Part shown: positions 12,216 through 64,000 of the stretch, piece after piece
How positions within the stretch are numbered: the stretch's first letter is position 1
How the letters are laid out: each line of letters begins with the position of its first letter
From: Geosiphon pyriformis uo1
Lineage: Eukaryota; Fungi; Glomeromycota
Reading direction: 5' to 3'
Assembly: GCA_016748015.1 (NCBI GenBank)
Contig: JAAOMT010000276.1
Span: 434,001 to 498,000, forward strand
DNA length: 64,000 bases
The notes under the pieces: model-generated
Seen by the model: only the letters and a program-made list of their open reading frames with translations
Told to the model about the DNA's origin: nothing
Database searches by the model: none
Position numbers and translations under genes: made by a program

Positions 12216-14517
12216 TAATTTATTAAGATATAAAAATTTTTTGTCTCTTTAATTTTATAACCACAACCAGAGCAAAGAGTAAAAAGGCTGCATCTAATAT
12301 CTGTTCTGAGATATCTAATAAAATTTCAACCAGAAGAGCTCTCTCTGTTGTAGAAGCAACTAGGCAAAATGTTTTAGAAGCCTTTCTCTTACCCAGTAAT
12401 CGTAATAAGCTGCCTTTAGTAGCCACTAAAACAACTTCCTCATCTTTGGCTGGTTTCTTACCAGTCAAAGTCCTCTCAAAGAGACACATTTGGGTTAGTC
12501 CCAATGTTGCCTCCACTCCAACCAAGAGCCCAAAAGTTTTTAATAATAAACCAATAAATAAGCTGGTATTTCTCTCCATAGCTTTAACATCTGGTGCTGC
12601 TAGCACTTCTTTTTCAAAAAAAATGGTCAAAAAGACCAAAAGTTCAGAAAAGTGAGGACAGTTGCTTGCGTCTACTATTGTTACACCGAATTCTTTTGTG
12701 GTTCCCAATAAGATCTTAGATGAAATCTCCATGGCATTATCCAGCACGTCATCCAAGATGGGCCAAGATCAACCACTGACTGTATTGCCAAATGTAGTGT
12801 CTTCTGGCAAATCATCGCCAGTTTTAGAAGCAAAACAATCTTCTCCTGTTGGGTCACCTGTCCTTGGAAACTGAGCTAATCAAATAGAAACTGATTCATC
12901 TTCTCCTCTAGTTTTTGGTGCTACTTCTGGTGGTGCTTGGGAAACTATTACTAGTTGTCAAAGGTTTGCTGAGTGGGTGGTCTCCACTCTGGTGCCTAGT
13001 GCTACTTTTAAGATCAAATTGGTTCATGTTAAGACTGTTTTTCAGTCTGTGCATGGTTTCTTGGATGCTAAATCTGTTTCAAAAGACAATGTAAAGCTTT
13101 TCTGTGTGAAGTTTGCTTCTCAACAGTCTTTGGAAGCTGTATTTCTGGTTGAGTTTACAAGCTTTGTTTGTTTGGCCACTCTTAAAATTGCCAAGTCTTT
13201 GGTGGTTTCTGAATCTGGTTCCTTTCCTGCTGCTGTTGTGCTGTGTGATATACCTTTGAGTGTATCTGCTGCTAATGTTAAGTTGGCTCTCAGTGTGTTT
13301 GGTAGTGTTACTCGTGTTGTGCTGAAGCCTGCTGGCATTTGGCAGTATGTGGTGGTTTATTTTAAAAAGTTGGATTTTGCTGTGTCTGTCTTGAAGCATT
13401 GGTCAGTCTTGGTGGGCAAAGATAGTGTTAGAATCCTCCCTCTGGTGAATCAAAATGAGACTATTTTGTCTTATAATAAGTTTAAGACCAAATTGGTCAA
13501 TCTTCCCCCTAACTGTACTGCTTTTGAAATCAGTGATATGATTTCTCAGATTGGTGATTGAACATGTTTTATTCCTCGTTTTCCTGATTCCGGTTGTCAT
13601 TCCTGGTTTCCTTTGGTTATATTTGACTTTTAAGGTGATTTAAATTCTGCTGTAGTCAAGACTGGTATTCTAAAGAAATGCCGTATCTGGTGAGAAACTC
13701 CTGGCTGCCAGTGCTGCTTTAGGTGTCAAGAAATGGGCCATCTGGCCATGGATTGCAAGATTTTCTCACCTTCCACTCCCAAAATTCCCAAGATTTTCAA
13801 GTCTCATTTTGTGGGTTCTGCTTCATATGTCAAGACTGCTGCTCCTTCTGGTTTTTCTGAGTTTCCTTCTTTAGTGGCTCTTTCGGCTGCTTCTGCTGCT
13901 GATCCTGTTGTTGGTTCCAGATTGGACTCTTTGGAAAAGCAGATTTCGGATTTGGCTGCTCTGGTTAAGTCTATTGTTGAGCCTGTTGGTTCTTTGGTTG
14001 CTTTGGTGTTTCATCTTCTTAATGATAATGCTGTTAAAGCTGTTTAGGTCGAGAAAGATATTATTTCCATGAAGAGTGCTGTTAACAATTTTGCTAACCT
14101 CATGGTTGGAGTTTCTAAGGACATTGCTTGTCTTAGATCTAAGGTTGACTTTGGTGGTATAGATTATGATAGTATACTGGCTGCTAAGCCTTCCTTTTTA
14201 AGTGAAGACACTGTTGAGTGTGTTATTGCTTTGTGGTAAATGTCTGGTGCTGAAACCAGGAGCAATATTGAATCTACTAAATTGTTTCTTAGCGAGTTTA
14301 TTTTTGACTCTAGGAATCTGAATGGTATCATTAAGAAAATTCGTGGGTTGGGATTATTTTCACCTACTTTTGATTCAGCGTAGTGAGTCTTTGATTGGGC
14401 CAAGTATCTGATCACGTGTAGAAAACACATGATTTATGCCTATAATGTAATTTCTTCTGTGGTATTATAGTTTTAGATTGTATTTGGGTCTCGCTCATTA
14501 AATAAATAAATAAAAAA
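12216..14517 (+). mobile_element. ORF1-only non-LTR element D1 (HAL1-like)
   Basis: TSD AAATTAATAGA at 12205-12215 and 14518-14528; A-rich tail ~14490-14517; single ORF1-like frame; no ORF2. Confidence 0.85.
12257..14383 (+). pseudogene. ORF1-like protein of D1 (~708 aa: S/P-rich N-terminus, RRM-like domains, CCHC knuckle, coiled coil)
   Basis: Fragments 12446, 12662, 12977 and 13733 share one frame; CFRCQEMGHLAMDC; RLDSLEKQISDLAALVK; start decayed to ATA; internal stops. Confidence 0.8.
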
Positions 14518-17064
14518 AAATTAATAGAGATCATTGAAAATTTAATTTTAAGAATATCAACAATGCAAAATAAAATTGGTTTAAAGATACTATATTTGCT
14601 AATATTATAATATATTTTAAGAAATTTGTTGCTTTTAAAAAAATTTTGAATTTAAATACAATGTAGAATATTTAAAAATAATATATTTTTTAACTAATAA
14701 AATATTTAAAAAAAAGTAATTCAAAAAATTTAATAATATTTTTACCAAAAATTTTCAAAGTTTCATAAATTAAAAATTTTGGTGTCTAAAATTATTAAGT
14801 TTTTATAAGTAAGATCCAATAATAAATTAGTTTTTTTAATAAACTGTTAGATATTTTTAAACTGTAATAAGGCTTTAAGTATTTAAGTTTTGTTAAATTC
14901 TGGTACTGGTTTTAATAGTGTGAGCTTTGTTTTATTTAATGTAAAAAAATCTTATCATGTTTTTAAACTTACCAAATTATTAAAAATTAAGAAATTAAAT
15001 ATTAAATCAGTTATTATTAAACAAATAAAAAATATTGCTGTTAATAAAAATTATATAATCAGAAGTGTTTTAGAACACTTTTTTCAAAAAATAGTTTTAG
15101 ATTACTTAGTTGTTAATAATAAGCTGGTTCTAAATTCTAATAAAGTTAAGTTTAAAATTAATATAATTATGAAAAATTAAACAAAAAAAAATTAATGTTA
15201 AACAATGTTTTAAAATTATGAGATTATTAATATTTGTCTTTGGTTTATATTAATAATAATGTTTTTTTTAATGATATAAGTACTATTATATATGATAAAA
15301 TATTATATGTAATCAAAAATTTGTTTAATAGAAAAACTATTAACTTGTTTAATATTATTAATAAATTGTAAAAACATTATAATAATTTTGTTTTGGAAAT
15401 GTTTTTGGATTTACTAAACTTTTGTTTAATATATAAATTTGTTTTTTAATCTTAAAAAAAAGTTTAAGTATTTATAATTTTTAAATCATATAAATAAAAA
15501 AAAGTTTTGACTAATACCAAATCTATTGTCTTAATTAAAACTGTTTAAAAAATTCTTTTCAAGATTTTTTTAATCAGAATTTTTTTAGTTTATAGTAAAT
15601 TTAATGTTCTTTATAATAACAATTTTTTTGTTTTAAAAAGTATTATTATTCAGTTTCCAATTTTTGTAATGAACTTGATAATAAAAGATGTTTTAAAAAA
15701 AATCATAAACTTTAGTTGGTCTTGTAAAATATACAAAAAACATACAATTTTGTTAATTGATATTATTTAGAAAGTAATTTGGTTTGTGTAAAAATATGTA
15801 AGCAGTTTATAAGATTTTTTGGTAATATTTACAATAATAAAGTTAATTAAATTATAATAAATTATAAATTAATTAATAGATACCAGATATATAATAGTCT
15901 AAATTAAGTTGAAATTTTTTCTTTACTGTTTTAAAGAATTTTTTATAATTTTTTATTATACAAAATAAAAAAATATAAAAGTTTGTGTAATTATTATCTT
16001 AATACTAAGTTTATTGTCTAAACTAACAGAGTTAAAAGTTAGACTGAATTGATTTTTTTTTAACAACTGATGCTTTTATTAACAATATTATCTAAGTAGA
16101 AAATAGTTAAGCTGTTACTTAATATATTCTAAATATTGCAAATAAGTTTTTTAAAATCAATAAAATTTTAATTAACAATAAAAAAACAATAGTTATTTCT
16201 ATTAATTAGAAAATCAAAGAAACTTTATTATTGATAAGTGGTCTGTTGATTTCTATTGTATAGAAAAAAAAATTTTATAAATATTTAAGTATTTATTTAT
16301 TATTAAAAGATTTGTCTAAATTTAGTCTGGCAAAAATATATTTAAATATTAAGTTTTTTGCTAATATAGTCTTAAAAAAATTATTTTAAACAAATAATTT
16401 CTTTATTAAGTTTTGGCTGTCCTTTAACTTGTTGTTAATTACAGAATTTAATTTAGTTTTATCTTTAAAAATATATGCAACAAATGTGATATGTTAATTA
16501 AAAAGTATCTAAAAATAAAAACTAGTTTACTAAAAAAATTTTTTAATAAGACTAATTATTATTTATTTTTATATAACTTGAAAATTTTTGAGCAGATGTA
16601 AACAAAAAATAAAGTAGCAATAATAATGTATTTTTTTAATACTAAAATTTAGTGTAAATAGCTTATAAAAACATAACAATCTTAATTAAATAGAAACATA
16701 TCTTTAATAATTTTAATATTCTATTTATATTATTTATGTTCTTAATTAAAATATTTTTTTTTGTTATTATTTATATAATGTTTGTTATAAAATTAGAATT
16801 TAATTTAAATTATTTATTAATAAAATATTAACTTAGAAACCAAAAGCTTTAATTTTAGAAAATATAAAATACAAAAATTTTTAATATATAAAGTTTTATT
16901 AAACTAATATTTAGAAAACACTTAATTAGTAACAAAATACACAATATTTTTAAGATATTTTTATATTATATCTAAGATACTTAATAATTTTAAACTCTTA
17001 AAATTGTATTTTAAAGCAATTAATTTTTGCAAAATAATATCTTTAAATTTAATTTATTTTATAT

Positions 17065-34560: not shown

Positions 34561-36336
34561 CTATTCTTGACTCCTTGGTAGAAGCACGAATAATTGCTTT
34601 TAAAAAGATAAAACAGTTCCAAAAAAAGCTTAAGAAAAAAAAAACCTATAAAACACTTTCTTTAAGTGTTGGTGACTTGGTACTAGAATACTGTTCTAAC
34701 AGAGACAATGTTTATAGTAATAAATTTTCTAGCCAGTGGAAAGGACTTTTTATAGTTAACAAAGTTTTGAACAATGGTTCTTATATTCTTCAAGATCAAT
34801 TCAGAACAATCTTTAATAATCATCCTGTTCATGGTACATGATTCAAGAAATATTATAAATGACCTGATTGGCTGCCTGTTGTAGTAATACCAATTCAAAT
34901 GATCAGTAAAAATCAAGTATAAATAAATGCACCATTCCCAAAACAGAGGTATCTTCAATCGACATAAACCATTATTTTCTGGATCAAAACATTCAAAACA
35001 CCTTCTATACTTTTTATGAGTATTGGATCAAAAACTATCCAAATACTACTCTAACCATTGGAAAACAAACCACCATAACTGATAACAATAAAACACATAC
35101 TGTTACTAGACCAAAGAAAACTACTACCAAAAGAGAAAAAATTGGTAGTAAAATGGATAAATATCTGTTAGAAAGTATAACAGCAGCTATACTTCCACCT
35201 TCTAACACAATTGGAAAAACACTTCAAGAAATCTTACCCATAGACAAAAACTTGTCATATGGAAGGCAATTAGAACTCTATGGTCACCTTGGTGAAATAA
35301 TAGAAGATATGAAACTCATAAAGAAAACAACTTCAGAGATACAAGCAGAAATTTTGGGCATTATATGGTTAGATGTCCTAAGAGTTTTAACTATTGCTAG
35401 AAGAGCCAAAACTCTAATACAAAGATTTGGTCTCTTGAATACAAAACTCATTTCACCTCAAGTGTTATATACTTTATCCACAAAAGACTTCAACAAACTA
35501 GTTAGCTTTGAGTTAGATAAAACTATTCAAATAGATTACCTCATGAATAGCTTGATTTCGCTGGAGCTCAATCTCTTTGGAGAGGATGATGTTATGGTTG
35601 AAACTTATACTTCTTATTAATTATTACATGTATTAGCCACTGATGTCATATAAATTAGCCACTCTAATTTTAGTAAGTGATTATTGATCTGATCAATAAC
35701 CTGACTATTGACTTGATCATTGACCTAATCATTAACTTGATCAATGACCTGATCATTGATCTGATCATTGACCTGATCATTGACCTAATCATTGACCTGA
35801 TCATTGACCACTTTTTATAGTTATATAAGCAATGAATCTTTTAACTGTAGAAAAGCATGTAAGAATCAAAAAAATAAAGAAATAAAATAACAATTTCATC
35901 TTAATCTCTCTTATCACTAATTTCTCTTTCCCTACTTTCAAGTATCTGAACATCTTAAAGATAAAAGATTACTTGTTGGTTATTCCTTACCCTTTTCCTG
36001 AAATGTGTAATTGCAACATTTGAAGATTATTGAATAAAACATGACTGAAGAGCACATCTGATACTTGATATTGAATTCTAAGAGCACTGACGTGAGACAT
36101 AGAATTATACCAAGTATGATTATTTGTTGACAGTACAAACTATCCCTCTATCTTCAAATTCTCTAGTTATCTTTGAAAAGTATAGTGACTGAGATATTTT
36201 ATGAGACTAATCTCACACATTGAATTCATACTTATTCAATTCACTCTTTGAAGTTGAATTCCCTTTGATTTTTTTTATCACCCTACAATCCTGTTCTCTC
36301 TTGCTATCTGTTAGCTTATTACTCCAATCTGTAATA
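34561..36336 (+). mobile_element. Family A 3' fragment A4 (INT end, ORF3, PPT, 3' LTR 35590-36336), inserted in D4
   Basis: ORFs 34542-34841 and 35153-35620; PPT GGAGAGGATGA; reverse-orientation LTR with 11 x 12-mer. Confidence 0.9.
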
Positions 36337-37143
36337 CTGCTTTTGAGATAAGTGATTTGGTATTCCAAGTTGGTGGCTGTACATGTTTTATTCCTTGCTT
36401 CCCTGAATCTTACCAATATCAATGCTTTGCTGTGGTTATATTTGATTCTTTGGAATCTCTGAATGTTGCTGTGTCAAAAACTGGTACTTTGCATGATTGC
36501 CACATCTGGTGGAAGACTCCTGGATGTCACTGCTGCTACAGGTGTCAAAGACTTGAATCATTTGGCTGTGGACTGCAAGAAGTTACCTCCTCTTCCACCC
36601 AAACTCTCTTCCAACACTTCTGATGACCCCAAAGTTTTCAAACTTTCATTTGCTAGATCTAAATTTTATGCCAAAGCTGCTGTCTTTGTGGTTCCTCTTG
36701 TTGCTGTTGCTGCTAATATGGACTTGGATCTCAATAGTCCTTCCAAAACTACAACACCCATGTTGTCTGCTGTCTCTTTTGTTTCCAATTCTGCTGTTGA
36801 ATCTAGGTTGGCTTCTCTAGAATCCCATCTTAGTGAACTGTTTGTGTTCATAAAATCCTTGGTTGAACCTGTTGGTACTCTGGTTGTATTGGTTACCAAA
36901 TTGCTGTCTACTCCACCTACTGTGAATGTATCAGTTAAAGAATGTGTGGCTGGATTGGCTAGACAAAATAAAGGTTTGGCTGCTGTTGCTTCCATGATAC
37001 AGAAAAAAATAACACATCTTGAGAAAAATGTGAGCAGGTCTGCTTGGAGGATGCATCAGATGATGATGACATGGTTGATGATAATGATGACAATAATAAA
37101 GATTTTTCAGTCTATGATGACACCTTTGATGTTATAATGCACC
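36337..37143 (+). mobile_element. Family D fragment D4 (C-terminal half of ORF1-like gene)
   Basis: Closely similar to D2 from ~51265 to 52079; HLAVDC knuckle end, SRLASLESHLSEL. Confidence 0.85.
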
Positions 37144-37679
37144 TTTTTTTTTTTTTTTTTTGTTAATGTGTAGCCACACTGGTCATTTATTAGTTAAGTC
37201 ACCCAATAATACAAAATCACAAGATGCAGCTAATCACAAACAAAAAGCTCTAACTACATGCTAGTACTATCTTTGCTACCTAATGTATTGAACATATCAA
37301 ACTCATACATCTTACCCATAATGTTAACGAGCTCATGACTATTCTTAACCATACCACTCATCCACTTAGCAGTCTAATCAGGATTGAATTTGATACCAGG
37401 AGACTGAATTTCTCACAGTTGCATCATCATATCAAAAGTGTTATCATAGACTGAAAAGTTTTTAACTTTGTTATTATTATCATCCATATCATTATCATCA
37501 GATACATCCTCCAAGGAGATCCGATCACACTTTTTTGTTAAAAACTTAACATCTCTATTCAACATAGAAGCCACAGTAGCCACAGCTTTAACTTGTCTTT
37601 CCAAACTCACCATACTTTCCCTTAATGTCATGTCCACAGCTGGTGGAATAGACAGCAGTTTGGTAACCAGCACAACCAG

Positions 37680-46220: not shown

Positions 46221-46243
46221 TTGACAAAAAAATATATAAGAAC

Positions 46244-46903
46244 ATGGTCAATGTGACAGAAGAGATCAGAAAAATGGAAATTACAGACAATATCCATTCA
46301 CTAGCCCAACAAATTTTTCAATTAATCCAACACCAAGAGATGGAAATTACAATCAATTAACAAACCATTCATTACAAAAATATAGCAAAGATACCACAAA
46401 ACAAAGCACAGAAAAGACTTGAAAATGTTGTTAACAAGATCATGACCAAGATAAAATTGGCCATAAAAGAACAACAAATAGTCAGATTACACCAAGAACT
46501 TACCAGAGAAACTTGGACTTGGTAGACACAACAATTTCCAAAAAATTATTGTTATTTTTACTTGGGACAACACGTGAATATCCAGAACTTATATACGGAT
46601 AAAACAAAACAGTTATTCGACACAACAATACTACAACAACTAGAACATTTTGTGGGAAAAAACAACTTATCCACATAAGCTCAAGCTATATACCAGATAC
46701 ACACAGTATTTCAGGATCGACCAGAAATTCTACTCAACAAAGCAATGGATATGATTACTAGTAATCAATTGGGAAAAATCACCAATGCTCAATTTGAAAA
46801 ATTACAGACTCAAATAACACAAGTAATTCTCGAAAATGAAATTCAGGAAATACTTCAAGAGAGAGAATTAAAAGAATTAGATTTTGACAGAGCTCAATAT
46901 TAA
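46244..46903 (+). pseudogene. B-family ORF3 (220 codons, 3 premature stops)
   Basis: ATG to TAA in one frame; stops explainable by single transitions; ends DFDRAQY* as in B1. Confidence 0.75.
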
Positions 46904-46916
46904 AAGAAGGGAATAA

Positions 46917-47814
46917 TGTTACTCATAGAATATAAGAAATATAGTATTATTAGTCAGTAGATATTAGCCAATCAGATGTAGACATAGTAAATGTGGAATT
47001 CCAAGATTCCTCTTAGAGGAATTGCAGGATTCCAGAAATTTCAGGATTCTCCGACAAGGAATTGCAGAATTGCAGAATTCCAAGATTCCTCTCATCAGGA
47101 ATTGCAGGATTCCAGGAATTCCAGGATTCTTGTCACAAGGAACTAAGAAATTGAGGAATCTCAAATATGTATATATAGCAGTAGTGTTAAAAGCAGAAAA
47201 GACAGAATCAACATCAAGAATTCTTAGCTTAGTTACCACAATCCTTAAATAAAATAATTATTCACTATATCAAATTTCTTCTTCACTATCAACACTTTAT
47301 GTTGATAGTAACTGATATTTAACCATACTAAAACAATAGCTCTTGATCACAGCTATTGATGAGATACGAATCAGAATTGCCTTGGCTTATTTGCTTTATT
47401 TCATATTATTTGCTTTCTTTCTTTTTTTTTCTTTTCTGTCTTTGCTTTGTTGTTTTATACTAATTGATTAAGGATTAAAAGCACTGAGTTATTGACATCA
47501 TGGATAGCCTGGTAAAAGACCCAGAAATAAGGATAGAATTTTATATATTATCGGATAGCTTACCAGAAAGGCACGACTACCAGAATAAATCCGGCCTCTA
47601 TACTGAAAAAGAAATTGGACGGAATTGCAATTCTGAAGACTATTACAATTACAATTGAATCTCTGTTCATTATACAAAGAACTCAACCCAAAACCTTCAG
47701 ATATCAAAACCTTCAGATTACCAATACCAACATCAACAGAAATCAAGATAGCTTTTGAGCACCAAGTTACAAGTTTGTTATTTAATTCCACCGCCGAAAT
47801 AATCATCTATAACA
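46917..47814 (+). repeat. 3' LTR of B2
   Basis: Homologous to 37680-38549, preceded by PPT AAAAGAAGGGAATAA. Confidence 0.93.
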
Positions 47815-49930
47815 CCAGAGAACCAACAGATTCAATTATAAACTTAATTAACAATGCCAACTTATTGAGATGGAATTTCATAGGAGCCAATCTGGATCCA
47901 ACAACAGCAATTGGAACAGGGGAGATGCCAGGAACCATGAGTACTACAACTTTGGGGAGTGAATCAAGAACAGGATTTATACCAGTAGCAGCAGCAGCAG
48001 CAGGAGAAACCACAAAGGCAACAGCTTTGGCATAAGACTTAGCTCCAGCAAATGAAGACTTGAAAACTTTGGGACCACCATTGGAGTTGAAAACAAACTT
48101 GGGAGGAAGAGGTAGTGACATCTTGCAGTCCACAGCTAAATGATCCAAATCTTAATACCTGTAGCAGTGATGGCATCCAGGAGTTTCCTACCAAATATGG
48201 CTACCATGCAAGGTACCAGTTTTTAACACAGCATTGTCCAAAGATTCCAGAAAATTGAAGGTAACCACAGCAAAACATTGATGTTAGTATGAATCAGGAG
48301 ATTGGAGAATAAAACAGGTTTGACCACCAACCTGGGAAACCAAATCACTAATCTCAAAGACAGTACAGCCAAAAAAAAGATCAACCAACTTAGCTTTAAA
48401 TGCATCTCTTGAAGCAATAACTTCTCTTTGGTTAACTACAGGAAGAATTCTAACATTATCTTTTTTGACCAGTACAGACCAGTGTTTGAAAGCCTCAGCA
48501 GCAGAAAAAATGTCTTTGAAATAAACTACAGCATATTGCCACAAGCCAGCTGGCTTCAACTTAACAGAAGTGACAACACCAAAAATGCCAAGAGCAGCTT
48601 TAATGTCATCAGGAGAAGTACCCAAGGGGACATTACAAAGTGCAACAGACAGAGGAAAAGAAGACACAAAGGCCACACCAGAAGACCGTGCAATCTTAAG
48701 AGTGGTCAGAAGAACTTCTTCACCAATGGCCACTTTGATGGCACCATTTAGACTTTCCTAAGATGCAAATTCTACACAGAACAACTTGACAGCATCTTGT
48801 AAAACTGACTTAAGCCCAATACAACCAGGCAGCAGCTAAAACAAGAAACTAAACAAGGCCATTTTAATCTTAAATGTACTACCAAACACAAGATTGGAGG
48901 CCACCTGACCAGAAAATCTTTGACGACCATTCACATTTTCCCAAGCACCACCATCAGCAGCACCAGAAACTGGGGGAGGGACAGTTGATTCCATTTCCAT
49001 CTGATCAGCCCAATCTTTGAGATCATCTGGATTGATGGACTGTTTTGCTACTGGAATTGGCAATTATCTGCTGAAGATTACCACATCAGGCAACACAGCC
49101 AGTGGTTAATCTTGGCCCATCTTGGGAGATGTGCTGCTGCTGTTGCCGTCCATATCAGGAAGAGGGCTGGCTGCTGCTGTGGAGATCTTACTGAAGATCT
49201 TATCTGGAACCACAAAGGAGTTTGGTGTGACCATAGCAGTTGTGACTGCCTGCTGCTGTTTTTTGGAATTTTTGGCTTTTATGTCCATTTGTGAAGCAGT
49301 AGTAGTAATAGTAGTAGTAGAAGTGGTGAGAGTGAGAAAGACCAACTTGTTGACTGGTCTGTTATTAAAAATCTTTGGGTTTTTAGACAACACTAGAACT
49401 AACCCAAATGTGTCTTTTGGAAGGAACTTTGAATGGAAAAGAATCACCAGCCAAAGATAAAGAAAATGAACCAGAAGCTGCTAAAGGCAGCTTTTCACTA
49501 ATATTTTTCAAAGGAAATGTAGCCAAAACATTTTGTCTAGCTGCTTCAATAACAGAGAGACTCTCTTGTGTTAAAACTTTATTAGTTATTATAAAGAAAG
49601 TAATGTTTGCAACTTTTTTACTCTTAGCTTTAGTTATGGTCATAAAAATTAGAAGAAAAAGTGTTTTTTTAAAAACAAGCCAATTATAGTCAAGAATACA
49701 AATTAACAGCTAAATGAAAAAAGTGAGACAATCAAACAGACACACAATTTCTGTTGGTATCAGTTAATTACTTTGTCTTTGTTAATAACACAGTGTGGAT
49801 AGCTAACTTAAGACAGGGAATGCAGAGTATTCTGAACACAGCCAGCTCTTTCTTTAGAATGGTGGATATTGAGATCAACTTAGACAAGACTGAAACAATG
49901 ATGGTCAGACCCTTTAAGAGAAAATCAGTG

Positions 49931-52382
49931 AGATGGGAGAGTCATAGTAAAAAAACTCTTTTTCTCCTAAATTTCATGACCATGAATAGAGCTAAGAGTA
50001 AAAAAGTTGCAAACTTTACTTTTCCTATAGTGACTAATAAAGTTTCAACACAAGAGAGTCTCTCTGTTATTGAAGCAGCTAGACAAAATGTTCTGGCTAC
50101 ATTTCCTTTAAAAAATAATAGTAATAAGCTGCCTTTAGCAGCTTCTGGTTCATTTTTTTCACCTTTGGCTGGTAGTTCTTTTCCAGTCAAAGTTCCTTCA
50201 AAAAGACACACTTGGATTAGTCCCAGTGTTGTTTCCACTACTTCAAAAAGCCCAAAGATTTTTAATAACAGACCAGTCAACAAGTTGGTCTTTTCTGCTC
50301 TCACCACTCCCACTATTACTTCTACTACTACTGTTTCACAAATGGCTATGAAAGCTAAAAATTCCAAAAAACAGCAGCAGGCAGTCGCAACTGCTATGGT
50401 CACACTGAACCCCTTTGTGGTTCCAGATGAGATCTTCGGTAAGATCTCCACAGCAGCAGCCAGCCCTCTTCCTAATATGGATGGCAACAGCAGCAACATA
50501 TCTTCCAAAATGGGCCAAGATCAACCACTGGCTGTGTTGCCTGATGTGGTAATCTCCAGCAGATTATCGCCAATCCCAATAGCAAAACAGTCCATCAATC
50601 CAGATGATCTCAAAGATTGGGCTGATCAGATGGAAATGGAATCAACTGTCCCTTCCCCAGTTTCTGGTGCTGCTGATGGTGGTGCTTGGGAAAATGTAAA
50701 TGGTCATCAGAGGTTCTCTGGTTAAGTGGCCTCCAATCTAGTACCTGGAGCTACATTCAAGATCAAAATGGCCTGCTTGGTTTCTTGTTTCAGTTACTGC
50801 CTAGTTGTATTGGGCTTAAGTCAGTTTCATGAGATGCTGTTAAGTTGTTCTGTGTGGAATTTGCATCTCAGGAGTATCTAAATGATGCCACCAAAGTGGC
50901 CATCAGTGATGAGGTGTTTTTGACCACTCTTAAGATTGCACGATCTTCTGGTGTGGCCTCTGTTTCTTCCCCTTCCTTGTCAGTTGTACTGCACAATGTA
51001 CCTTTGGGTACCTCTTCTAATGACATCAAAACTGCTCTTGGCATTTTTGGTGTTGTCACTTCTGTTAAGTTGAAGCCTGCTGGCTTATGGCAATATACTG
51101 TGATTAATTTTAAGGACATTTCTTCTGCTGCTGCTGTTCTCTCTAACTGGTCTGTATTGGTCAGAAAAGATAGTGTTAGGATTCTTCCTGTTGCCAACCA
51201 AAAGGAGGTTATTTTCTCAAAAGATGCATTCAAAGCTAAGTTGGTCAATCTTCTATTTGGCTGTACTGCCTTTGAGATAAGTGATTTGGTCTCCCAAGTT
51301 GGTGGCCATACATGTTTCATTCCTCACTCCCCTGAATCTTATTAATGTCAATGCTTTGCTGTAGTTATCTTTGATTCTTTGGAATCTCTGAATGTTGCTG
51401 TGTCAAAAACTGGTACCTTGCATGGTTGTCGCATCTGGTGAGAAACTTCTGAATGTTGCTGCTGCTACAGGTGTCAAGACTTGAATTATTTGGCTGTGGA
51501 CTGCAAGAAGTTGCCTTCTCTCCCACCTAAACTCCCTTCCAACACCTTTGGTGGCCCCAAAAATTTCAAATCTTTATTTGTTAGATCTAAATCTTATGCC
51601 AAGGCTGCTGCTTTTGTGGTTCCTCCTGGTGCTGCTGCTGCTGATATGGAATTGAATCTTGGTGGTTCTCCTGAAACTACAACACCTGTGTTGTCTGCTG
51701 TCTTCTCTGTTCCCAATACTGCTGTTGAATCTAGGTTGACTTCTCTTGAATCCCACCTTAGTGAACTATCTGTGTTGATTAAATCTTTGGTTGAATCTGT
51801 TGGTGCTCTGGTTGCATTAGTTACCAAATTGCTGTCTACTCCATCTGCCATGGATGTGTCAGTTAAGGAATGTATAGATGGGTTGGCTAAGCAAAATAAA
51901 AGCTGCTACTGTGATGCAGAAAAGATTAACACATCTTGAGATAATAAGTGAACGGATTTGCTTGGAGAATGGATCAGATATTGATGACATGGTTGATGAT
52001 GTTGATGATGATGATGATGATGATGATGAAGATAAAGATTTTTCAGTTTATGATAACACCTTCAATGTTATAATGCACCTATGGGAAGATCAGCCTTCTA
52101 GTATCAAATCCAGTTCTGATCAGACTGCTAAGTGGATAAGTAGTATGGTTAAGAATAGTCATGAGCTTATTAGTATTATGGGTAAGATGTATGAATTTGA
52201 AATGTTTGATACATTAAGTAGCAAAGGTAGTACTAGCATGTAGTTAGGGCTTTCCACTAAGTGGTTAGCCACATCTTATAAACTTTGTATTATTGGGTGA
52301 GCTGGCTTTATGAAAGTGCCAACTTTATTGTTAGACAAAACTAATAAACGATCAGCATGGCTACACGTTAACATAAAAAAAA
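49931..52382 (+). mobile_element. Full-length ORF1-only element D2 (2.45 kb)
   Basis: 15-bp TSD AAGAGAAAATCAGTG (49916-49930, 52383-52397) preceded by TTT; poly(A); ~45-nt leader; one gene; ~130-nt 3' UTR. Confidence 0.92.
49976..52243 (+). pseudogene. ORF1-like protein of D2 (~750 aa)
   Basis: MTMNRAKSKK start; RRM-like blocks; knuckle remnant; coiled coil; poly-Asp; ends GSTSM*; stops and frameshifts. Confidence 0.85.
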
Positions 52383-53248
52383 AAGAGAAAATCAGTGCTG
52401 GTTGAACCACTAAAATTTGGGCCAAACAAACAAACTCTGAAACTCCTGGATCCATCTACATGTACCTGATATTTGGGGAGGTGGATTAGAGCAGATGGAA
52501 AAAATAAAACTGTGCTGAAAATGATTAGATCTGACATAGAAGCAGTGTGTAAGGTTATTAGGAAAAAACACATCACTAAAAAACAGGTGAGTAACAAGCT
52601 AACAGGTAGCAAGGGAGAACAGAATTGTAGGGTGATGGAAATAATCAAAGGGGAATTCAACTTTAAAGAGCGAATTGAATGAGTATGGATTTAATGTGCA
52701 AGATCAATCTCATAAAATATCTCAGTTACTATTCTTTTCAAAGGTAACTGGAGAATCTGAAAGTAGAGAGATAGTCTGTACTGTCAACAATTAATCACTG
52801 TTGAAATTAATTCTATGCCTTCATGTCAGCACTCTTAGAATTCAATATCAGGTATCAACTTGTGCTCTTCAGTCATGTTTATACAAATAATCTTCAATAC
52901 TACAATTATTCAAACAGAAAAAGGCCAACGAGTAATCCTTTATCCTAAGATGTTCAGATACTTGAAGGTAGGGAAAGAGAAATTAGCAATAAGAGAGTAA
53001 TTGAGATGAAAGTTGTTATTTTTATTTATTTGATTCTTGTCTGAGAGATGATTTTCTATAGCTAAGAGACTCATTGCTTATATAGCTAATGAAAGTGGTC
53101 AATGACCAGATCAATGACTAGGTTAATGATCAGGTCAATGATCAGGTCAATGATTAGGTCAATGGTCAGGTCATTGATCAGATTAATGATCACTATCTAA
53201 AAATAAAGTGGCTAATTATATGACATCAGTGGCTAATACATGTGATAA

Positions 53249-53819
53249 CTAATAAAAATTATGGGTTTCAACCATAACATCATCCTCTCCAAAAAAATTG
53301 AGCTTCAGCAAAATCAAGCTATTTATAAGGTATTCTAATTGAAAGGTTTTGTCTAACTCAAAACTAACTAGTTTGTTGAAGTCTTTTGTAGATAGAGTAT
53401 ATAGTACTTGAGGCGAAATAAGCTTTGTATCCAAGAGACTAAATCTTTGTATAAGAGTTTTGGCTCTTTTTGCAATGGTCTATGATTTCATCAAGACAAC
53501 CATAGAGTTCTAGTTGCCTTCCATATGACAAGTTTTTGTCTATGGGCAAGATTTCCTTAATCATTTTTCCAATTGTCATGGAAGGTATAAGTATTGCTGC
53601 TGTTATGCTTTCCAGCAAATACTTATCCATTTTGCTACCAATTCTTTCTCTTCTGGTAGTGGTTTTCTTTGGTCTAATAACAGTATGTGTTCCACTGTTA
53701 TCAGTTATGGTAGTTTGTTTTCCAATGGTCAAAGTAGCATTTGGATAATTTTTGATCCAGTACTCATGGAAAGTATAGAAAGCATTTTGAATGTTTTGAT
53801 CTAGGAAATAATTGTTCAT
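53249..53819 (-). pseudogene. A-family ORF3 (A3), internal deletion near 53480
   Basis: Retains ATG of MNNYFLDQ; fragments 53439-53915 and 53249-53434. Confidence 0.75.
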
Positions 53820-53860
53820 GTCAATTGAAGATACCTCTGTTTTGGGAATGGTGCATTTAT

Positions 53861-55174
53861 TTATATCTGATTTTTGTTGATCATTTGGGTCAGTATTACC
53901 ACAACAGGTAACCAATCAGGTCATTTGTGATATTTCTTGAGTCGTGTGCCATGAACAGAACGATCATTGAAAATTGTTCCATATTGATCTTGTAAGATAT
54001 AAGAACCATTGTTCAAAACTTTGTTGACTATAAAGGGTCCTTTCCACCAGCTAGAGAATTTATCATCATAGACATTGTCTCTGTCTGAACGGTATTCTAA
54101 AACTAAGTCACCATTACTTAAGGAAAGTGTTTTATATGTTTTCTTTTTCTTAAGCTTCTCTTGGAATTGTTTTATCTTTTCAAAGGCAATTACCCGTGCT
54201 TCTATTAATGAGTTAAGAATGGTACCAAGTCTTCTTTGCAAAATGTCTTTGTAATTCCCTATTGTTATTTCTTCAAAGGGTATTGTCTCAATGTTAGTTT
54301 CTATTAGTAGGGTTGCCATTTGTCCATAGAGTAGATAAAAGAGTTCATAACTTGTTATGTCATGATTCACAGTTCTATAAGCAAACAAAGCTAAAAGCAG
54401 TACCTTGTCCTATAAGTTTGTTTCTTTGCTAGTTTTGGCTAAGGTTTCACATAGTGTTCTATTGAAACATTCCACTAGGCCATTTGTTTGGAGGTGATAA
54501 GGAGAAGAAAGTTTGTGATGTATTCTTATTTTTCTGCAAAGTTCTTTAACAAGTGTATTGAGAAAAGCTCTTCCTCTGTCAGATAAAAGTTCTTTTGGGC
54601 AGCCATGGTAACAAATGATATCTTCATAAATGAAATTGGCTATTGAGACTGCTGTTTGGTCTGGAGTGGCTCTTGCTTCTACCCACTTTGTAAGATAGTT
54701 GGTAGCTGTGATAATGTATCTGTTGCCATCAGGAGTTATTGTTAAAGGTCCAACAACATCTATACCAATTCTGTTAAAGGGTTGACCAACAGAAATTGGA
54801 TGAATATCTTTTTTGCGATTGGGTTTTCCTCTTCTTTGGCAGATATCACAGGTTTTGATGTATTCAGCAATGTCTTTTCCCAAGGTAGGTCAATAATAGT
54901 GAGCTAAAATTTTCTGAATTGTTTTTGTTTTTCCAAAGTGTCCAGCTAATGGATCAGTGTGCATATTGTAGATCACAATTTCTCTTTCTTCAAATCTGAT
55001 AACTCTCTGGGGGCAGTCAGGATCTTTTCTATTTCTATTATAAAGTTGGTTCTGGCGAATCAAATAGAAATTTGATTGTTTGCGTAAATGTTCTCTTTGT
55101 TGTCATGTGTATTTCAGTGGGTATTGTCCTTTATCCAAAAATTCAATTAAGGCAGAGTAGTTGTCCAAGTCCAT
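53861..55174 (-). pseudogene. Integrase ORF (A3)
   Basis: IGIDVVGP, LSDRG, NGLVECFN, WKGPF. Confidence 0.92.
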
Positions 55175-55241
55175 TATCATGTTTGTCAAAAAGGAGGAAT
55201 TACTAATAATTAAGTTGGTTTGGTTTGAGAGGGTTGTTCTG

Positions 55242-57929
55242 TTACTGGATGGTAAGCATCGGCATTTTAATGATTAGCTCTTTTGTGATGTTGAATATCA
55301 TAGTCGAATTCATTCAAGTGGAGTATTCAGTGAGTTATTCATTTGTGTTCTAGCCTCTTTTTGTTGTGCAGCCAAACCAAAGCTTGGTGATCTGTTACCA
55401 CCAAAAACTTCACACCAAGAAGATACTTACTTCAGTAACTGGTGGACTATACTACTGCTAAGCATTCTTGTTCAGTGACTGAATAGTTCTGTTCTGCTGG
55501 GGAAAGGGTTCTACTGGCATAAGCTATGGCATGTTCTTTGCTATCTTCATCTTTCTGGAAGAGAACAGCACCAAGTCCAAAGCCAGATGCATCAGTGTGG
55601 AGGATAAAGGGTCAATCTAAATCAGATTGCTTGAGGATGGGTTCTGTAACCAGTTTTTCCTTTAAAGTTTCAAAGGCTTTTTGCTGATGTGTTCCCCAAT
55701 GGTAATTGACATTTTTCCTGAGTAGCTGATTGAGAGAAGAGGCGATTTTGGAGAAATCCTTGACAAATTTATGATAATAAGAGACCAAACCAAGAAAAAA
55801 GCATAGTTCATAAATGTTCATTGGTTGTTTGATGTTTTGGACTTTTTTAACTTTGGCTGAGTCAGGAAAGATTCCATCTTTTGTGATAAGATGACCAAGG
55901 AACTGGGTGGATTGTCTTCCAAAGAAAAATTTGATTGGGTTGATCTTGAGGCCAGCATTTCTAAGGAGGTCAAAAACCATTTGCAAATGTTCCAGGTGTT
56001 CATCCCAGGTTTTTGAGTATACCATTATGTTGTCCAAATAGATTAAAACAAAGTTTTTCTTGACTGATTCAAATACTTTATCCATTAAGCATTGAAAGAT
56101 GAGGGAGGGGGGGTGTTGGTGAGACCCAAAGACATGACTGTGAATTCATAGGTGCCATACTTGGTGATGAAGGCAGTTTTCTTTCTGCTTTCTGAATCCA
56201 TCTCTACTTGCCAGAATCCAGCAGTTAAGTCAATGGTTGAGAAGAAAGCAGCATCTTTGAATTGGTCTAACATTGCATCAATCTTGGGAAGTGTGTACAT
56301 GTCTCTTTCAGTGATGGCATTTAATTGGTGGTAGTTGATACAGAAGCATAGTGTTCCACCTTTCTTGGATATTACTACAACTGGGAAAGCCCATTCACTC
56401 TTGGTTTTTTGTATGAATCCAAGATCTTTCATCTGGTTTATCTCTTTTTTGATAAACTTATCATTGTGCTGATTGGATTGATAAGGCTTCAAATGGATGG
56501 GTCAAGTTTCTCTGGTGGTGATAGTGTGTTGTATCATATGGGTATGTCCAGGGGTATCACCTTCTTTGGAGATAACTGGGCTATTTCTAGCCAGCAAATT
56601 TTCAATGTCTATTTTTCTTTCTTCTGGGGAGGGTTTTTTTTGTTCTACAACCAGTGATTGGATCTCAGATGGTTCATTCTCAAAAGACTTCTGTACTTCT
56701 TTCAATTCTTCTCTGGGTATCAAACTGATTGGTTTCCAATCTTTGTAATAGATCAGGCATAATTTGCATTCATCACTTGGAGAATACAAGAGTTTGTTGC
56801 ACCAACACCGGGCACAAAGACCATGCCACCAAAAACTGTATTTGGCTTTCTTGCCAGGTTTTCTTTCAAAGATTCTTCTAAGAATATTATAATAAGGCCA
56901 GCAGATTAGCTTGCTATTTACAATGATTCCTTCTTTGTCTGCTTTAAAATTGTCTAGTGGTTTGCCATTGCTGGTGAAGGTGGTATAGGCGAGTTCAGCA
57001 GTTTCTTCTTGCTCTTCTTGTTCTTCTTCTTCATCGCTCTCTTCATTATTTAATTCATCTGATTGTTTTTCTTCTTGGTTTTGTTTGGGTACTGGGGGAG
57101 TTGTCCAATGGCAACACTTAACCACAATGGGTTTTTTACCACATCTGATAGTTAATTCACAAAGTTCATAATCAAGCAAAGCTTTTGCTTTCTTGAGCCA
57201 TTCATTGCCAACAATGATGGTGTATTCCTTGGCTTCAGAAACTTCCATGTCAGTTTCAATGCTAATTCCATTGATGCGGACAGGAACAGCTTTGGCAATA
57301 CCCAGTCTTTTCTTTTTGTCACCATGTACATTGGTCATTGGTCTGGTGGAAGGTTCATCAATCTTTCTACCAATTGCTTCCAAGAAGTGTTTGGCAATGA
57401 CACTAACAGATGATCCACTGTTCAGAATTAAGTCAATGAAATATCCAGCCACTTGGACTTTACAAATCAGAGGGATGACATTGCTGTTGTCAGCAAGTCC
57501 AGCTTGGTGAGAGTGCTTGTTGGTTTTTGGTGTCTTCTTCTTTGGAATCAAGGATTTGCGAAGATTCTTTCTGAACTGTGGGTGGGTCATTAACTGGCCA
57601 AAGGTAATCTGTGCTGGGGTTTCCATGAGATCTTTGACAACGGAATAGGGTCCAGATTTTTGTACAATTTCTGGGAGTTCCAACTTTGGAGGATTTTTAA
57701 AAACTTTATTCTTTGGTGGCTCATTGTTATCAGCAGCAGAAGTTAAGGCTTTGTTGGGGTCTAGAACGAAATCAATCTTGGCTTTCTTCTTCTTTCTGGT
57801 TGGTTCTGAGGTGTTGATTGCTAGTTCATCCATGTCATGGTCATCATCAGTTAAGTTAAAAGCATAAAAGAGGTTTTCTTCTGGTTGGCTTGCATTTTCA
57901 CCCTTTGGAGGTGCGCCTACCAGTTTAAA
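55242..57929 (-). pseudogene. pol: pol PR-RT-RNase H (A3)
   Basis: ORFs 56502-57833, 56085-56492, 55612-56085. Confidence 0.92.
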
Positions 57930-59473
57930 GGCTGATAAACAGTGGCTTCAATTAAGGGATCCTCTCCAAAGAAATTGATGTTGGCATGATTGGGTCTTTG
58001 ATTGGGGACATTGTTGTTGTTGTTGGGTCTGTTGTTTTGGTTGTTATTGTTTCTGGGAGCTGGAGGAGGCAGTGGAGGATTGTTGCAATCTCTGGAAAAA
58101 TGTCCAGTTAATTCACATTTATAACACACAGGAGGGCCACGATTTTGCTGTCTTTGATAAGCGGGTTGTTGGGGCTGATTAAAACGGTTTTCAAATCTGG
58201 GCCTTTGTGGTTGCTGGTTATCTCTGACTGCTTGGGCTAATGGTTCTAATAGCCAAGCAAGATTTGCTGTAAGTCTATCTATTAATTGTTCATTTGGATC
58301 TTGTGTCTGGACAGCAAAAAAAGTAGCAGCCATTTGAGGAGTAGGAGCCATAACAGGAGCAGGAGCAAAAACTGAAAGTGTGAATCCCAAATGCATTCTT
58401 TGATTGTCTTCAATTCTTTGGGTGAGTTCAATGGCCATATCCATAGTGGAATTATCTTTTAAAGCCAAGAGAGGCCAAAGAGCATACAATAAATCAGTTC
58501 TCAATTCTTTTGTGAAGAAATGGATTTTTTGCTCTTCAGTCCAGTTTCTACCAGAGTCTACATGCTTGATGAGTTTTCTGATTGCTTTGGCATATTCAGT
58601 CACAATTTTACCAGAACCTTGGGTTCTTCTTTCTAATTCCATACACCATTTGGATATTAAGATAAGGGTTCTGAATTTGTTTTCAAACCGGGTAGTGAAA
58701 GAGGTGTTGTTTTCTTCAATATTTGCTGGGGTCTATCTAACAATTTTTTGTTAAGCACCAGCATTGGTTTCTTGTGAAAACCAGGTAGCAGGGGAGCCTT
58801 GGAGGTAGCCACCAACAATTTGAAACTTGTACTCATCATCATATTGGTTGGCTGTAGCAGCTCTCTCAAAGTCATCCAACTATTCAATTGGGTCTTGGAC
58901 ATCACCTCTGAATAATGGTAATGGGGTGTTGTTTTTTCGCCCTAAAGCAGTCTGTATACCTTAGAGGGCAATCAGAATGTTTTGTTGCAGAGAGTTTTGA
59001 GCCATTGGTTCAGGTGTTACTGTTTGTGTGGAGTGTTCTGATTCACTTGAAAAGAGATCAAAAACAGGAGCAGTTTGATAGCTTTCTTCTTCTGTTTCAA
59101 GAGGAGTTTCTGTTAATTGATGGGCAGCAATCCAAATGTGGATTTGATGATTCAGATATTCAAAATCAGGGAGCTGTTGTTCAAAGGTTGCAAAATATAA
59201 GAGCTGATTGATACTGTTGTTTCTTCCTTCAAAGTCATCTTCAAAATAAGCTTGGTCAAAGTAATAGATTGTATAAGCTGTGTAGGTTTCAGCTGAATGC
59301 TTGTTCAAGAACCAGTTCCAAAAGTCTTGGAATTGTCTGCTGGATTGTTTTTCAATGGGAAAGCAAATCAAGCAGAAGGGCAAAGGATTGAGTTCAATAA
59401 AGTCTAGATTGTTTTTGTTGTGTGCTTTAAAATGTTCTTCTGATTGTTGTGGCAGGTATAAATAATCACCCAT
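57917..59473 (-). pseudogene. gag: gag (A3)
   Basis: CYKCELTGHFSRDC; ends YQPLNW* just after slippery site. Confidence 0.9.
57923..57929 (-). promoter_or_regulatory. Putative -1 ribosomal frameshift heptamer T TTA AAC
   Basis: Correct phase in gag; -1 frame is open into pol; conserved at 22534-22540 and 32328-32334. Confidence 0.75.
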
Positions 59474-60204
59474 ACAATAGGAAACAAAGTGGATTTTGAT
59501 AACCTCACAAGAAGCACCACTTTTATGTTATGGGTTGGAGTAACAAGCTAATGGATAGCAAGGGAGAACAAGATTGTAGGGTGATGGAAATAATCAAAGG
59601 AGAATTCAACTTTAAAGAGCAAATTGAATGAGTATGGATTCAATATGCGAGATCAGTCTCATAAAATATCTCAGTCACTATTCTTTTCAAAGGTAATTGG
59701 GGAATCTGAAGGTAGAGGGATAGTCCGTACTGTCAACAATTGATTACCACTGGTATAATTCTATGCCTCATGTCGGCACTCTTAGAATTCAATATCAGGT
59801 ATCAACTTGTGCTTTTCAGTTATGTTTATTCAAATAATTTTTAAATGCTACAATTATATATGTCAGAAAAAAGCCAACAAGTAATTTTTTATCCTAAGAT
59901 GTTTGAATACTTGAAGATAGGAAAAGGGAAATTAGCAATAAGAGAGTGATTGAGATGAAAGTTGTTATTTTTATTTATTTGATTCTTGTCTGAGAGATGA
60001 TTTTCTATAGCTAAGAGATTCATTACTTATATAACTAATGAAAGTGGTCAATAACCAGGTCAATGACTAGATTAATGATCAAGTCAATGATCAGGTCAAT
60101 GGTTAGGTCAATGATCACTATCTAAAAATAGAGTGGCTAATTATATGACATTAGTGGCTAATACATGTGATAACTAATAAAAATTATGGGTTTCAACTGT
60201 AACA

Positions 60205-60434
60205 ATATATTGACTGATGTTTTTTGTGGTAAGAGTACTTTGTATAATAGTGTGATACTCTATAGAGTTTCTGGTTATACTAGCATGTAGTTAGGCATAA
60301 CCACTTAATAGTTAGCCATATTTTGTAAATTAGATTATTAGGTGAATTGGCTTTATGAAAAAGTCATGTTCTGTGAATGTGGCTAAACTAATAAAAGACC
60401 AGTATGGCTACACATTAACAAAAAAAAAAAAAAA
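60205..60434 (+). mobile_element. LINE 3' end (ORF2 C-terminus, 3' UTR, poly(A)); probably the tail of LINE E
   Basis: Matches ~61057-61283; A15 tail; A3 is flanked by + strand LINE sequence on both sides. Confidence 0.75.
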
Positions 60435-61283
60435 GCTGGTTCCTCAACAATACATACATTTATTATAAAATTATTTTACAATATGCTGCCAACAGCAGAG
60501 GTGCTATACAACAAATGTTCTCTTGTGTATTTAAACAATCTGTGCAAAAGATGTCACAAAGAGGTAGAAACCAACTGGCACTTTTGGGAATGCTTTCTGA
60601 ATATTCAAATGAGTAAAACATTAATAGATAATGTAAGGAATAAGTGAATGTGGTATTTATCAAAAACAATGGGTGAAAAACATAAAAACTTAGAATATGG
60701 GAAAAAAATTGTTCTGTCTAATAAGTTCATTAAGTTAACATCCAACATAGATCTGCTATGTAAAAAACTGATCAATAAGCAATTTGGAAGGATCAATGCT
60801 TTTGCTGACATTGATCAAAAGACTAACAATAATATATTAATTAAGGTGTATAAATAGGCAGTAACTCAAGCAAGGAATAGATTATAAAGAAAATGTTGCA
60901 AATTACAAACTAAGTGAGAAAAATCAGTGGGTATTAATAACAAAGTTAAGAAAAACCTATCAAGAATGTTCAACATTCATAAAATATTAACAAGTAGTGG
61001 TAATGATATCAGCATATTCAAAGTTAAGTCAGATAATAGGTTTACATAGTGTAATAAAATACTGGTTGATGTTTTTTATAGTAAAATTACTTTATGTAAT
61101 AGTGTAATACTCCATAGATTTTCTGGTTATACTAGCATATAGTTAGGCATAACTACTTAGTGATTAGCCACATTTTGTAATTTAGATTATTGGGTGAGTT
61201 GGTTTTATAAAAAAGTCATACTTTTTAATATGGCTAAATTAATAAAAGACCAGTGTGACTACACATTAACAAAAAAAAAAAAA
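60435..61283 (+). mobile_element. LINE 3' fragment with zf-RVT domain, 3' UTR and poly(A), inserted in A5 integrase
   Basis: TFIIKLFYNMLPT...LCKRCHKEVETNWHFWEC from 60435; A13 tail 61271-61283. Confidence 0.85.
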
Positions 61284-64000
61284 CAATATTCCAATACTAA
61301 GTCATCAATATTTAAGGAAAGTGTTTTATAAGTTTTTTTTCTTAAGCTTTTCTTGAAACTGTTTTATCTTTTTAAAAGCAATTATTCATGCTTTTACCAA
61401 TAAGTTATGAATAGTACCAAGTCTTTTTTGCAAAATGTCTTTATAATTCTTTATTGTGATTTTTTCAAAGGGTATTGTTTCAATGTTAGTTTCTATTGGT
61501 AATATTGCCATGTGTTTATAAAGCAGATAAAAAAGTTTATAACTTGTTATGTTATGATTCATAGTTCTATAAGCAAATAAAGCTGAAGACAGTACTTTGT
61601 CTTATAAGTTTGTTTCTTCACTAGTTTTGGCTAAGATTTTACATAGTGTTTTATTAAAACATTTTACTAGGCTATTTGTTTGAAGGTGGTTAGAAGAGAA
61701 AAGTTTATGACATATTTCTATTTTTCTATAGTTTTTCAACCAGTGTACTGAGAAAAACTCTTCTTCTGTTAGATAAAAGTTCTTTGAAGCAGCCATGACA
61801 GCAGATAATATCTTTATAAATAAAATTGGCTATTGAGACTGTTGTTTGGTCTGGAGTGGCTTTTGCTTTTATACACTTTATAAGATAGTCAATAGTTGTA
61901 ATAATATATCTGTTGCTATTAGAAGTTATTGTTAAAAGTTCAACAATATTTATACCAATTTTGTCAAATGGTTGACCAACAAAGATTGAATAGATATCTT
62001 TTTTGTGTTTAGGTTTTCCTTTTCTTTGACAGATGTTACAGATTTTGATGTACTCAGTAATATTTTTTCTCAAGGTAGATCAATAATAGTGAGCTAAAGT
62101 TTTCTATATTGTTTTTGTTTTTCAAAGTGTTCAGCTAATGGATCAGTATACATATTGTAGATCACAATTTCTTTTTCTTCAAATTTAATGACTCTTTGGG
62201 AGTGGTCAGAATTTTTTCTATTTTTTTTATATAACTGGTTTTGGCAAATCAAATAAAAATTTGATTATTTGTATAAATATTCTCTTTGCTGTTAAGTATA
62301 TTCTGGTAGATATTGTCTTTTACTCAAAAATTCTATTAAGGCAAAGTAGTTATTCAAGTCTATTATCTTGTTTGTTTATAAGGGAGTTACTAATAATTAA
62401 GTTGGTTTGGTTGAGAGGTTGTACTATTATTGAATAGCAAGTCTAGAAAGAGCATTGGCATTTTGATAATTTGTTCTTTTGTGATATTGAAGATCATAGT
62501 TGAATTTATCCAAATAGAGTATTAAGCAAGTTATCTATTTATGTTCCAGTTTTTTTTTGTTGTATAGCCAAACTAAGGCTTGATAATCTGTTACTACTAA
62601 GAATTTCATACCAAGAAGATATTAATCCTAATAACTAATAACTCAAACTACTACTAAGCATTTTTGTTTTATAATTAAATAGTTTTTTTCTGCTGATATG
62701 AGAGTTTTATTAACATATATTATAGTATGTTTTTTGCCATTTTTATTTTTTTGTAAGAAAACAGCATTAAGTCTATAACCAGATACATCAGTATGCAGAA
62801 TAAAAAATTGGTCCAGATTAGGTTGTTTAAGAATTGATTCAATAACAAGTTTTTCCTTTAAAGTTTCAAAAACTTTTTGTTAATAAGTATTCCAGTGGTA
62901 ATTGACATTTTTTCTAAGTAGCTAATTAAAAAAAAAGAAAATTTTGAAGAAATTCTTGATAAATTTGCAATAGTAAGAAGCCAAACCAAGAAAAGAGCAT
63001 AGTTCAGAAATATTTATTGGTTGTCTAATGTTCTGAAGTTTTTTAACTTTAGCTAGATCAGAAAAAATTTCATCTTTTGTAATAAAATGACCAAAAAATT
63101 GGGTGGATTGTTATTTAAAAAAAAATTTAATTGGGTTTATCTTAAGGCCAGCATTTCTAAAGAGATCAAAAACCTTTTACAAGTGTTCAAGATGTTTATT
63201 TCAGGTTTTTGAGTATATTATTATGTCGTCTAAGTAGACCAGAACAAAGTTTTCTTTTACTAATTCAAATACTTTGTTCATTAGGCATTAAAAAGTAGGA
63301 GGAGCATTAGTGAAACCAAAAAACATAACTGTAAAATTATAGGTACCATATTTGATAATAAAGGCAGTTTTCTTTCTGCTTTTTGGATCTATCTCTACTT
63401 GTCAAAATCCAGCAGTTAAGTTAATGATTGAGAAAAAAGCAGCACCATTGAATTTGTTTAGCATTATATCAATTTTGGAGAATAAATATATGGCTTTTAT
63501 AGTAATAACATTTAATTGACAATAGTTAACACAGAAGTGTAGAGTTCTGTCTTTCTTAGATACCACTACAATTGAAAAAGCTCATTTACTCTTGGTTTTT
63601 TGTATGAATCCAAGATTTTTTATTTGGGTTATCTCTTTCTTGATGAACTTATTATTGTGTTAATTGAATTAATAAGGCTTCAAATAGATAGGACAAGTTT
63701 TTCTGATGGTAATGATGTGTTGTATTATATGGGTTTGTTCAGAGATATTATTTTCTTTTAAGATAACTGGGCTATTTCTAGCCAACAAATTTTCAATATC
63801 TATTTTTCTTTTTTTAAGAAAAGGTTTTTTTTGTTTTAATATAAGTGATTAGATCTTAAATGATTTATTTTCAAAGAATTTCTGTTTTTTTTCTAGATAC
63901 CAAATTAATTGGCTCCCAATTTTTGTAATAAATTAGGCAGGACTTGCATTCATTACTAGGAAAATACAAAGATTTATCATATCAGCACCTGGCACAAAAA
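61284..64000 (-). mobile_element. Older family A copy A5 (INT, RNase H, RT), runs out of window
   Basis: Colinear with A1 from ~18710 to 21440, with heavier transition load; ORF 61726-62073 integrase. Confidence 0.9.

Follow-up and report, generated by a model that had tools for sequence, protein, structure and literature searches.

Non-autonomous LINE partners that encode only ORF1 have been described from animals, as HAL1, HeT-A and Ag-Sponge (PMC5786205). The HAL1 (half-L1) elements of mammals encode ORF1p alone, end in poly(A), depend on a LINE and have several origins, and are described as derivatives of L1 itself (PMC5753468, PMC5786205). HeT-A, which accompanies TAHRE and TART in Drosophila, and Ag-Sponge in Anopheles are likewise ORF1-only, use the reverse transcriptase of another element and share a restricted niche with it (PMC5537684, PMC5786205). 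In stringent SINE/LINE pairs, such as those of UnaL2 in eel and of L1-clade LINEs in plants and Chlamydomonas, the partners have a common 3' stem-loop tail that is regarded as the signal for ORF2p (PMC3747384), and exchange of tails is known among SINEs (PMC5786205). Among early-diverging fungi, the bicistronic Grem-LINE1 of Mucor circinelloides occupies a few gene-free, pericentromeric regions (10.1101/706580). A limited literature search returned no fungal ORF1-only LINE partner and nothing on the LINE families of Geosiphon.

We analysed a stretch of 64,000 nucleotides of Geosiphon pyriformis uo1 (contig JAAOMT010000276.1, positions 434,001 to 498,000; hereafter the window), which contains copies of an ORF1-only element, D, and of a LINE family, LINE-B, with a common 3' tail (Table 1). 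Our main reading, to which we give a probability of roughly 0.7, is that D is a non-autonomous partner of LINE-B, of the HAL1/HeT-A type, carrying a captured tail. Like HAL1, D is non-autonomous, encodes only ORF1p and has a poly(A) tail, but its ORF1 is just 32% identical to that of LINE-B, its link to the LINE is a specific tail of predicted structure, and its host is a fungus. Like HeT-A and Ag-Sponge, it is ORF1-only and has a restricted chromosomal niche in common with its partner; those elements belong to the Jockey and CR1 clades, and HeT-A is telomeric with a Gag much like that of TAHRE, whereas D lies in internal islands and its ORF1 is foreign to LINE-B. As in stringent SINE/LINE pairs, the partners share a 3' tail of predicted structure, but D is a coding element of 2.45 kb that lacks a small-RNA head, and the tail is about 140 nt long with a predicted four-way junction. 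LINE-B resembles Grem-LINE1 in its confinement to few islands, and its approximately 40 single islands recall that element as a lead only; compared by description, LINE-B has an RNase H domain and none is listed for Grem-LINE1.

Table 1 Copies and fragments of elements D, E and LINE-B, with positions counted from the first base of the window
Feature	Position	Strand	Remarks
E, ORF1-only sister element of D	12229..14520	+	Apparently in decayed ORF2 of another LINE; 55% aa identity to D2 core
D1, D fragment without tail	36335..37143	+	3' end cut by D3 poly(A) end
D3, 3' part	37144..37679	-	ORF end, poly(A); tail at 37144-37266 lacks ~35 internal nt
D3, 5' part	47815..49671	-	
LINE-B reverse-transcriptase fragment hosting D2, left part	49672..49930	+	84-87% identical to RT of loci L024, L006, L018
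D2 TSD, left copy	49916..49930	+	15 bp
D2, full-length ORF1-only element	49931..52384	+	RRM and CCHC knuckle, tail 52231-52372, then poly(A)
D2 TSD, right copy	52383..52397	+	15 bp
LINE-B reverse-transcriptase fragment, in-register continuation 3' of D2	52385..52589	+	
LINE-B 3' end 1	60205..60434	+	Last ~28 ORF2 codons, stop 60288-60290, tail 60278-60419, poly(A) 60420-60434
LINE-B 3' end 2 (850 nt)	60435..61283	+	Decayed ORF2 C-terminus, stop 61140-61142, tail 61130-61270, poly(A) 61271-61283

The window holds further repeats. One LTR retrotransposon family, whose LTR contains a 12-nt tandem repeat and which has an additional ORF past pol, is arrayed on the minus strand (17065-34570, 52590-60204 and 61287-64000). 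A second LINE family, LINE-A, is represented by a 5' part with ORF1 and endonuclease at 7858-10138 (minus strand), cut at 7858. LINE remnants at 10600-12228, 14520-17000 and 24870-26900 have about 20% GC beside elements of 35-40% GC and show strong, patchy C-to-T decay. An exact tandem duplicate of 492 nt (10052-10543 and 10564-11055) flanks a run of N and is probably an assembly artefact.

Element D is 2.45 kb long and consists of one long frame with a match to RRM_1 and a weak match to zf-CCHC (Pfam). In D2 the frame runs from the ATG at 49976, about 45 nt behind the 5' start, to the stop at 52241-52243 (approximately 756 codons), interrupted in this copy by stops and frameshifts. A consensus of 26 copies is open as far as the terminal T-S-M-stop codons save for one stop, likely at a CpG site. 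Shared transversions gave an omega of approximately 0.44, a rough test of selection because singleton changes also gave approximately 0.53. ORF2 (EN/RT) is lacking: in 40 copies 140 nt separate the stop codon from the poly(A). One exact pattern matched at least 59 copies, and D2 is the only copy with both ends available for a comparison of target-site duplications. D3 is a single copy split by an LTR retrotransposon at 37680-47814 with a 4-bp duplication, CCAG. The 5' ends of D copies (49671 in the window; L002:868, L027:1016 and L059:2764 elsewhere) consist of an A-run, about 25 nt and the ATG, with hardly any 5' UTR. Judged by sequence, D is a protein-coding, ORF1-only, non-autonomous non-LTR retrotransposon, or half-LINE, whose product is a homologue of LINE ORF1p (28-32% identity to two LINE ORF1s). 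Its ORF1p homologue, the lack of ORF2, and its copy number, poly(A) and TSD place it in the broad class of non-autonomous elements with ORF1 (HAL1/HeT-A/Ag-Sponge), but the strict HAL1 feature, a 5' end and ORF1 derived from the partner LINE, was not found. The original prediction had cast the two families as a LINE/SINE pair; the shared tail agrees with that framing, but the SINE part is inexact because D is a protein-coding half-LINE. A SINE identity for D itself was rejected on its length, its long coding frame and the lack of a small-RNA head, as no tRNA or Rfam match was found anywhere in the window. No autonomous parent of D was seen among 160 proteins, and where long D/E-like gene models include stretches of ORF2, this looks like an artefact of nesting.

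For comparison we used 60 loci beyond the window (L numbers), chosen as top hits. An autonomous LINE copy had been expected in the window itself, which was not borne out, as both LINE 3' ends are dead fragments. The zinc-finger motif C-x2-C-x8-H-x3-C (CKRC...H...C) could be recognized by eye from 60543, as predicted, but zf-RVT was not called by Pfam. The second 3' end sits immediately behind the first, whose 5' side adjoins the LTR end at 60204. The first probably belongs to the same LINE-B copy as the fragment beginning at 49672, the host of D2, and would be its far end, separated from the rest by an LTR element together with the loss of about 2.1 kb. The same LTR family adjoins another LINE-B copy at the same base on a different contig (60204/60205 in the window and L030:1714), with differing junction bases (ATATA and GTATA) and flanks that are 85% identical, which may reflect either a hotspot for LTR insertion or an ancient duplication. 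The full LINE could be rebuilt, as had been proposed, since LINE-B tiles from ORF1 to tail across overlapping copies in the 60 loci, giving a composite in which the weakest join spans 106 nt with 77% identity. Its order is ORF1 (RRM, CCHC)-EN-RT-RNase H-zinc finger-tail; Pfam matched RRM_1, RVT_1 and RNase_H, with Exo_endo_phos below the cutoff (E 6e-4). Two places, C554 and C689, each have an ORF1 match and, approximately 4.9 kb away on the same strand, a tail match; the tiling predicts this spacing, which independently confirms that ORF1 and tail belong together. The TSDs measured 14 and 16 bp for LINE-B and 15 bp for D2.

The two families are linked by a shared tail. Both motifs by which the original prediction defined it occur exactly four times in the window, compared to 0-0.3 expected by chance, and at the predicted places: 60278/60389, 61130/61240 and 52231/52342 on the plus strand and 37266/37192 on the minus strand. 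D2 matched the two LINE tails with 77% identity across 155 nt (E ~1e-25), and its local scores of 111-115 against them far exceeded the shuffle maximum of 28. In alignment the homology starts at the T-S-M-stop codons and extends to the poly(A), as had been claimed, giving a common tail of about 140 nt in the four window copies and in 73 at related loci; the family consensus tails of D and LINE-B are 84% identical. All 73 near-complete tails examined lie directly 3' of an ORF end, 40 behind D and 33 behind LINE-B ORF2. The 300 nt 5' of the tail are unrelated, as also predicted (for D2, 444 of 500 shuffles equalled the real score), and a weak score upstream of D3 is a chance, off-register, AT-rich match of 21 nt. 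D3 ends in the same tail blocks but is missing about 35 internal bases of the tail.

Outside the tail, the DNA of D2 and LINE-B showed no similarity, and their 5' ends and N-termini could not be aligned. The core of D2 ORF1 is 55% identical at the amino acid level to E, 32% to LINE-B and 28% to LINE-A. A phylogenetic tree unites D and E (100/100) on a long branch and places LINE-B ORF1 outside their clade, and the split between D and LINE-B is much deeper than that between D and E, with branches of approximately 0.9 changes per site. The E ORF aligns with D to the C-terminus, and the tail behind it is unrelated to that of D. E is an apparent insertion with a duplication of about 11 bp; an E-type tail was not found on any LINE in the window, where the sole match was decayed AT-rich DNA. 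The nearest outside relatives (about 32% identical) are ORF1s that precede EN/RT ORFs in bicistronic metagenome LINEs, and the close relatives in a large protein library appear, from their sequences, to be Geosiphon gene models. The youngest pairs are similar in age (D 94%, LINE-B 95% identity), and nesting occurs both ways, with D2 inside LINE-B and a LINE-B copy inside D (L025).

These comparisons bear on whether D was made from LINE-B or joined to it. A recent deletion product was rejected, because the ORF1s are only 32% identical; nor is there a DNA match outside the tail, and the two fall in separate clades. An ancient internal deletion in a LINE-B ancestor, the classical origin of HAL1, with the tail then retained by selection or repeated conversion as ORF1 diverged and E swapped its own, is unlikely. 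It would yield the in-frame fusion to the last ORF2 codons, and LINE-B ORF1 is the best non-sister match of D among the Geosiphon ORF1s tested (32% vs 28% for LINE-A). Yet the noncoding tail is still 84% identical across a split far deeper than that between D and E, the 5' ends and N-termini fail to align, and a metagenomic autonomous ORF1 (P0099) is weakly nearer to D/E than LINE-B is (81/90). The combination of an 84% identical noncoding tail with a 32% identical protein points to transfer of the tail, and the different tail on the sister element E indicates that at least one swap happened. An ORF foreign to LINE-B fits the original proposal that D acquired a LINE tail as its mobilization signal; we infer the remainder of that proposal, namely that ORF2p recognizes the tail and that the LINE-B tail was gained by D.

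The tail RNA is predicted to fold into a four-way junction, closed by a 13-bp helix between the T-S-M-stop codons and the last 13 bases before the poly(A). Since the last codons and the stop form one side of this helix and the final bases the other, its 5' arm begins where the homology begins. Consensus folds gave z-scores of -5.5 for LINE-B and -3.4 and -2.7 for two D subfamilies, strong values that depend on consensuses in which CpG sites were restored from TG/CA mixtures by a rule blind to structure. The four window tails fold weakly (z -0.7 to -2.1), owing to decay by transitions. The closing helix and first two arms are alike in the three consensuses, one D subfamily departs from the other two in its third arm, and the arms of the distal hairpin vary by group (GCCAUGC/GUGUGGC, GCCACA/UGUGGC and CCAAC/GUUGG). 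RNAalifold recovered the same closing helix. The stem that the original prediction had drawn between TAGCCACAT and ATGTGGCTA has arms that are complementary as strings, yet its pairing probability is 0 in the family consensus folds. Covariation in the aligned tails, proposed as a check on that stem, was not above shuffles (97 of 500 as high), so the structure is predicted rather than proven; per-copy covariation is uninformative here because dead copies change mainly by transitions.

LINE-B and D occupy the same small part of the genome. An exact tail pattern had 121 matches, and the 100 matches listed lay on 35 contigs with one cluster per contig. A D ORF pattern independent of the tail had 59 matches, 54 of them no more than 50 kb from a known place of LINE-B; zones of this size around LINE-B make up at most 3.8% of the genome, in approximately 40 islands. 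E (at least 40 copies) is dispersed: among the matches examined, 1/40 of E, 0/40 of LINE-A and 10/40 of one LTR family fell within 50 kb of LINE-B. Location tracks the tail rather than the ORF1 lineage, for which targeting via ORF2p would be the simplest reading. The islands, one per contig on about 40 contigs with a summed span of about 1.9 Mb, are candidate centromeric or pericentromeric regions. At L001, L007, L026, L042, L052 and L038 many LINE-B/D copies begin right after the poly(A) of another copy, in head-to-tail stacks, which suggests insertion into each other's poly(A) or template jumps.

The co-clustering could also be read as survival or detectability in special domains, with relaxed recognition of poly(A) only and a tail that serves RNA stability or 3' end formation. 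The covariation result would be compatible with this, exact-pattern and top-hit searches do overlook hypermutated copies, and the LTR family is itself somewhat enriched near the islands. We nevertheless consider it improbable, as E copies at 82-93% identity persist genome-wide, which implies that young non-LTR insertions survive outside the islands, and three subfamilies retain the entire fold, even at a hairpin where their sequences diverge. That an independent SINE, with TSDs of its own, was inserted behind each of the two ORFs and forms the tail, the outcome by which the original prediction could have been overturned, is extremely improbable and has no point in its favour, because a single 15-bp TSD encloses the ORF, tail and poly(A) of D2 and every near-complete tail lies behind a D or LINE-B ORF end, and the tail itself provides the stop codon of both ORFs and carries no small-RNA head.

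Returning to D as a LINE-B partner with a captured tail, since D has the LINE-B tail and lies in the same islands, it most likely borrows the LINE-B copying enzyme, and we infer from these sequence patterns that it is mobilized in trans. Under the mechanism we propose, an old ORF1-only lineage, represented by D and E, would have gained the 3' end of LINE-B at the end of ORF2, through either recombination or RNA template switching. The capture would have been fused in frame, such that the D ORF now ends at the LINE-B stop codon, and the captured unit coincides with one predicted RNA domain, the four-way junction; a closing helix that reaches into the T-S-M-stop codons would explain why homology sets in inside the coding region. 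This domain would then be bound in trans by LINE-B ORF2p, which would use D RNA as the template for target-primed reverse transcription, with D ORF1p probably packaging the RNA. D would thereby inherit the insertion preference of LINE-B, and both families would accumulate in the same approximately 40 islands.

Many gene models annotated as 'hypothetical protein G9A89' correspond to parts of these elements, a point relevant to annotation. With an ORF1 lineage of its own and a swappable tail, D joins the biology of half-LINEs with tail capture of the kind known from SINEs, and by comparing D with E one can test directly which of the two, the tail (via ORF2p) or ORF1p, sets insertion sites. More tentatively, an independent ORF1-only lineage may switch its helper LINE by way of a folded 3' RNA domain, with the tail and not ORF1p setting where it lands and with islands that could be centromeric. 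If so, D and E would be a natural experiment that places LINE targeting in the pairing of tail and ORF2p, and the LINE-B/D islands would mark unmapped centromeres in Glomeromycotina.
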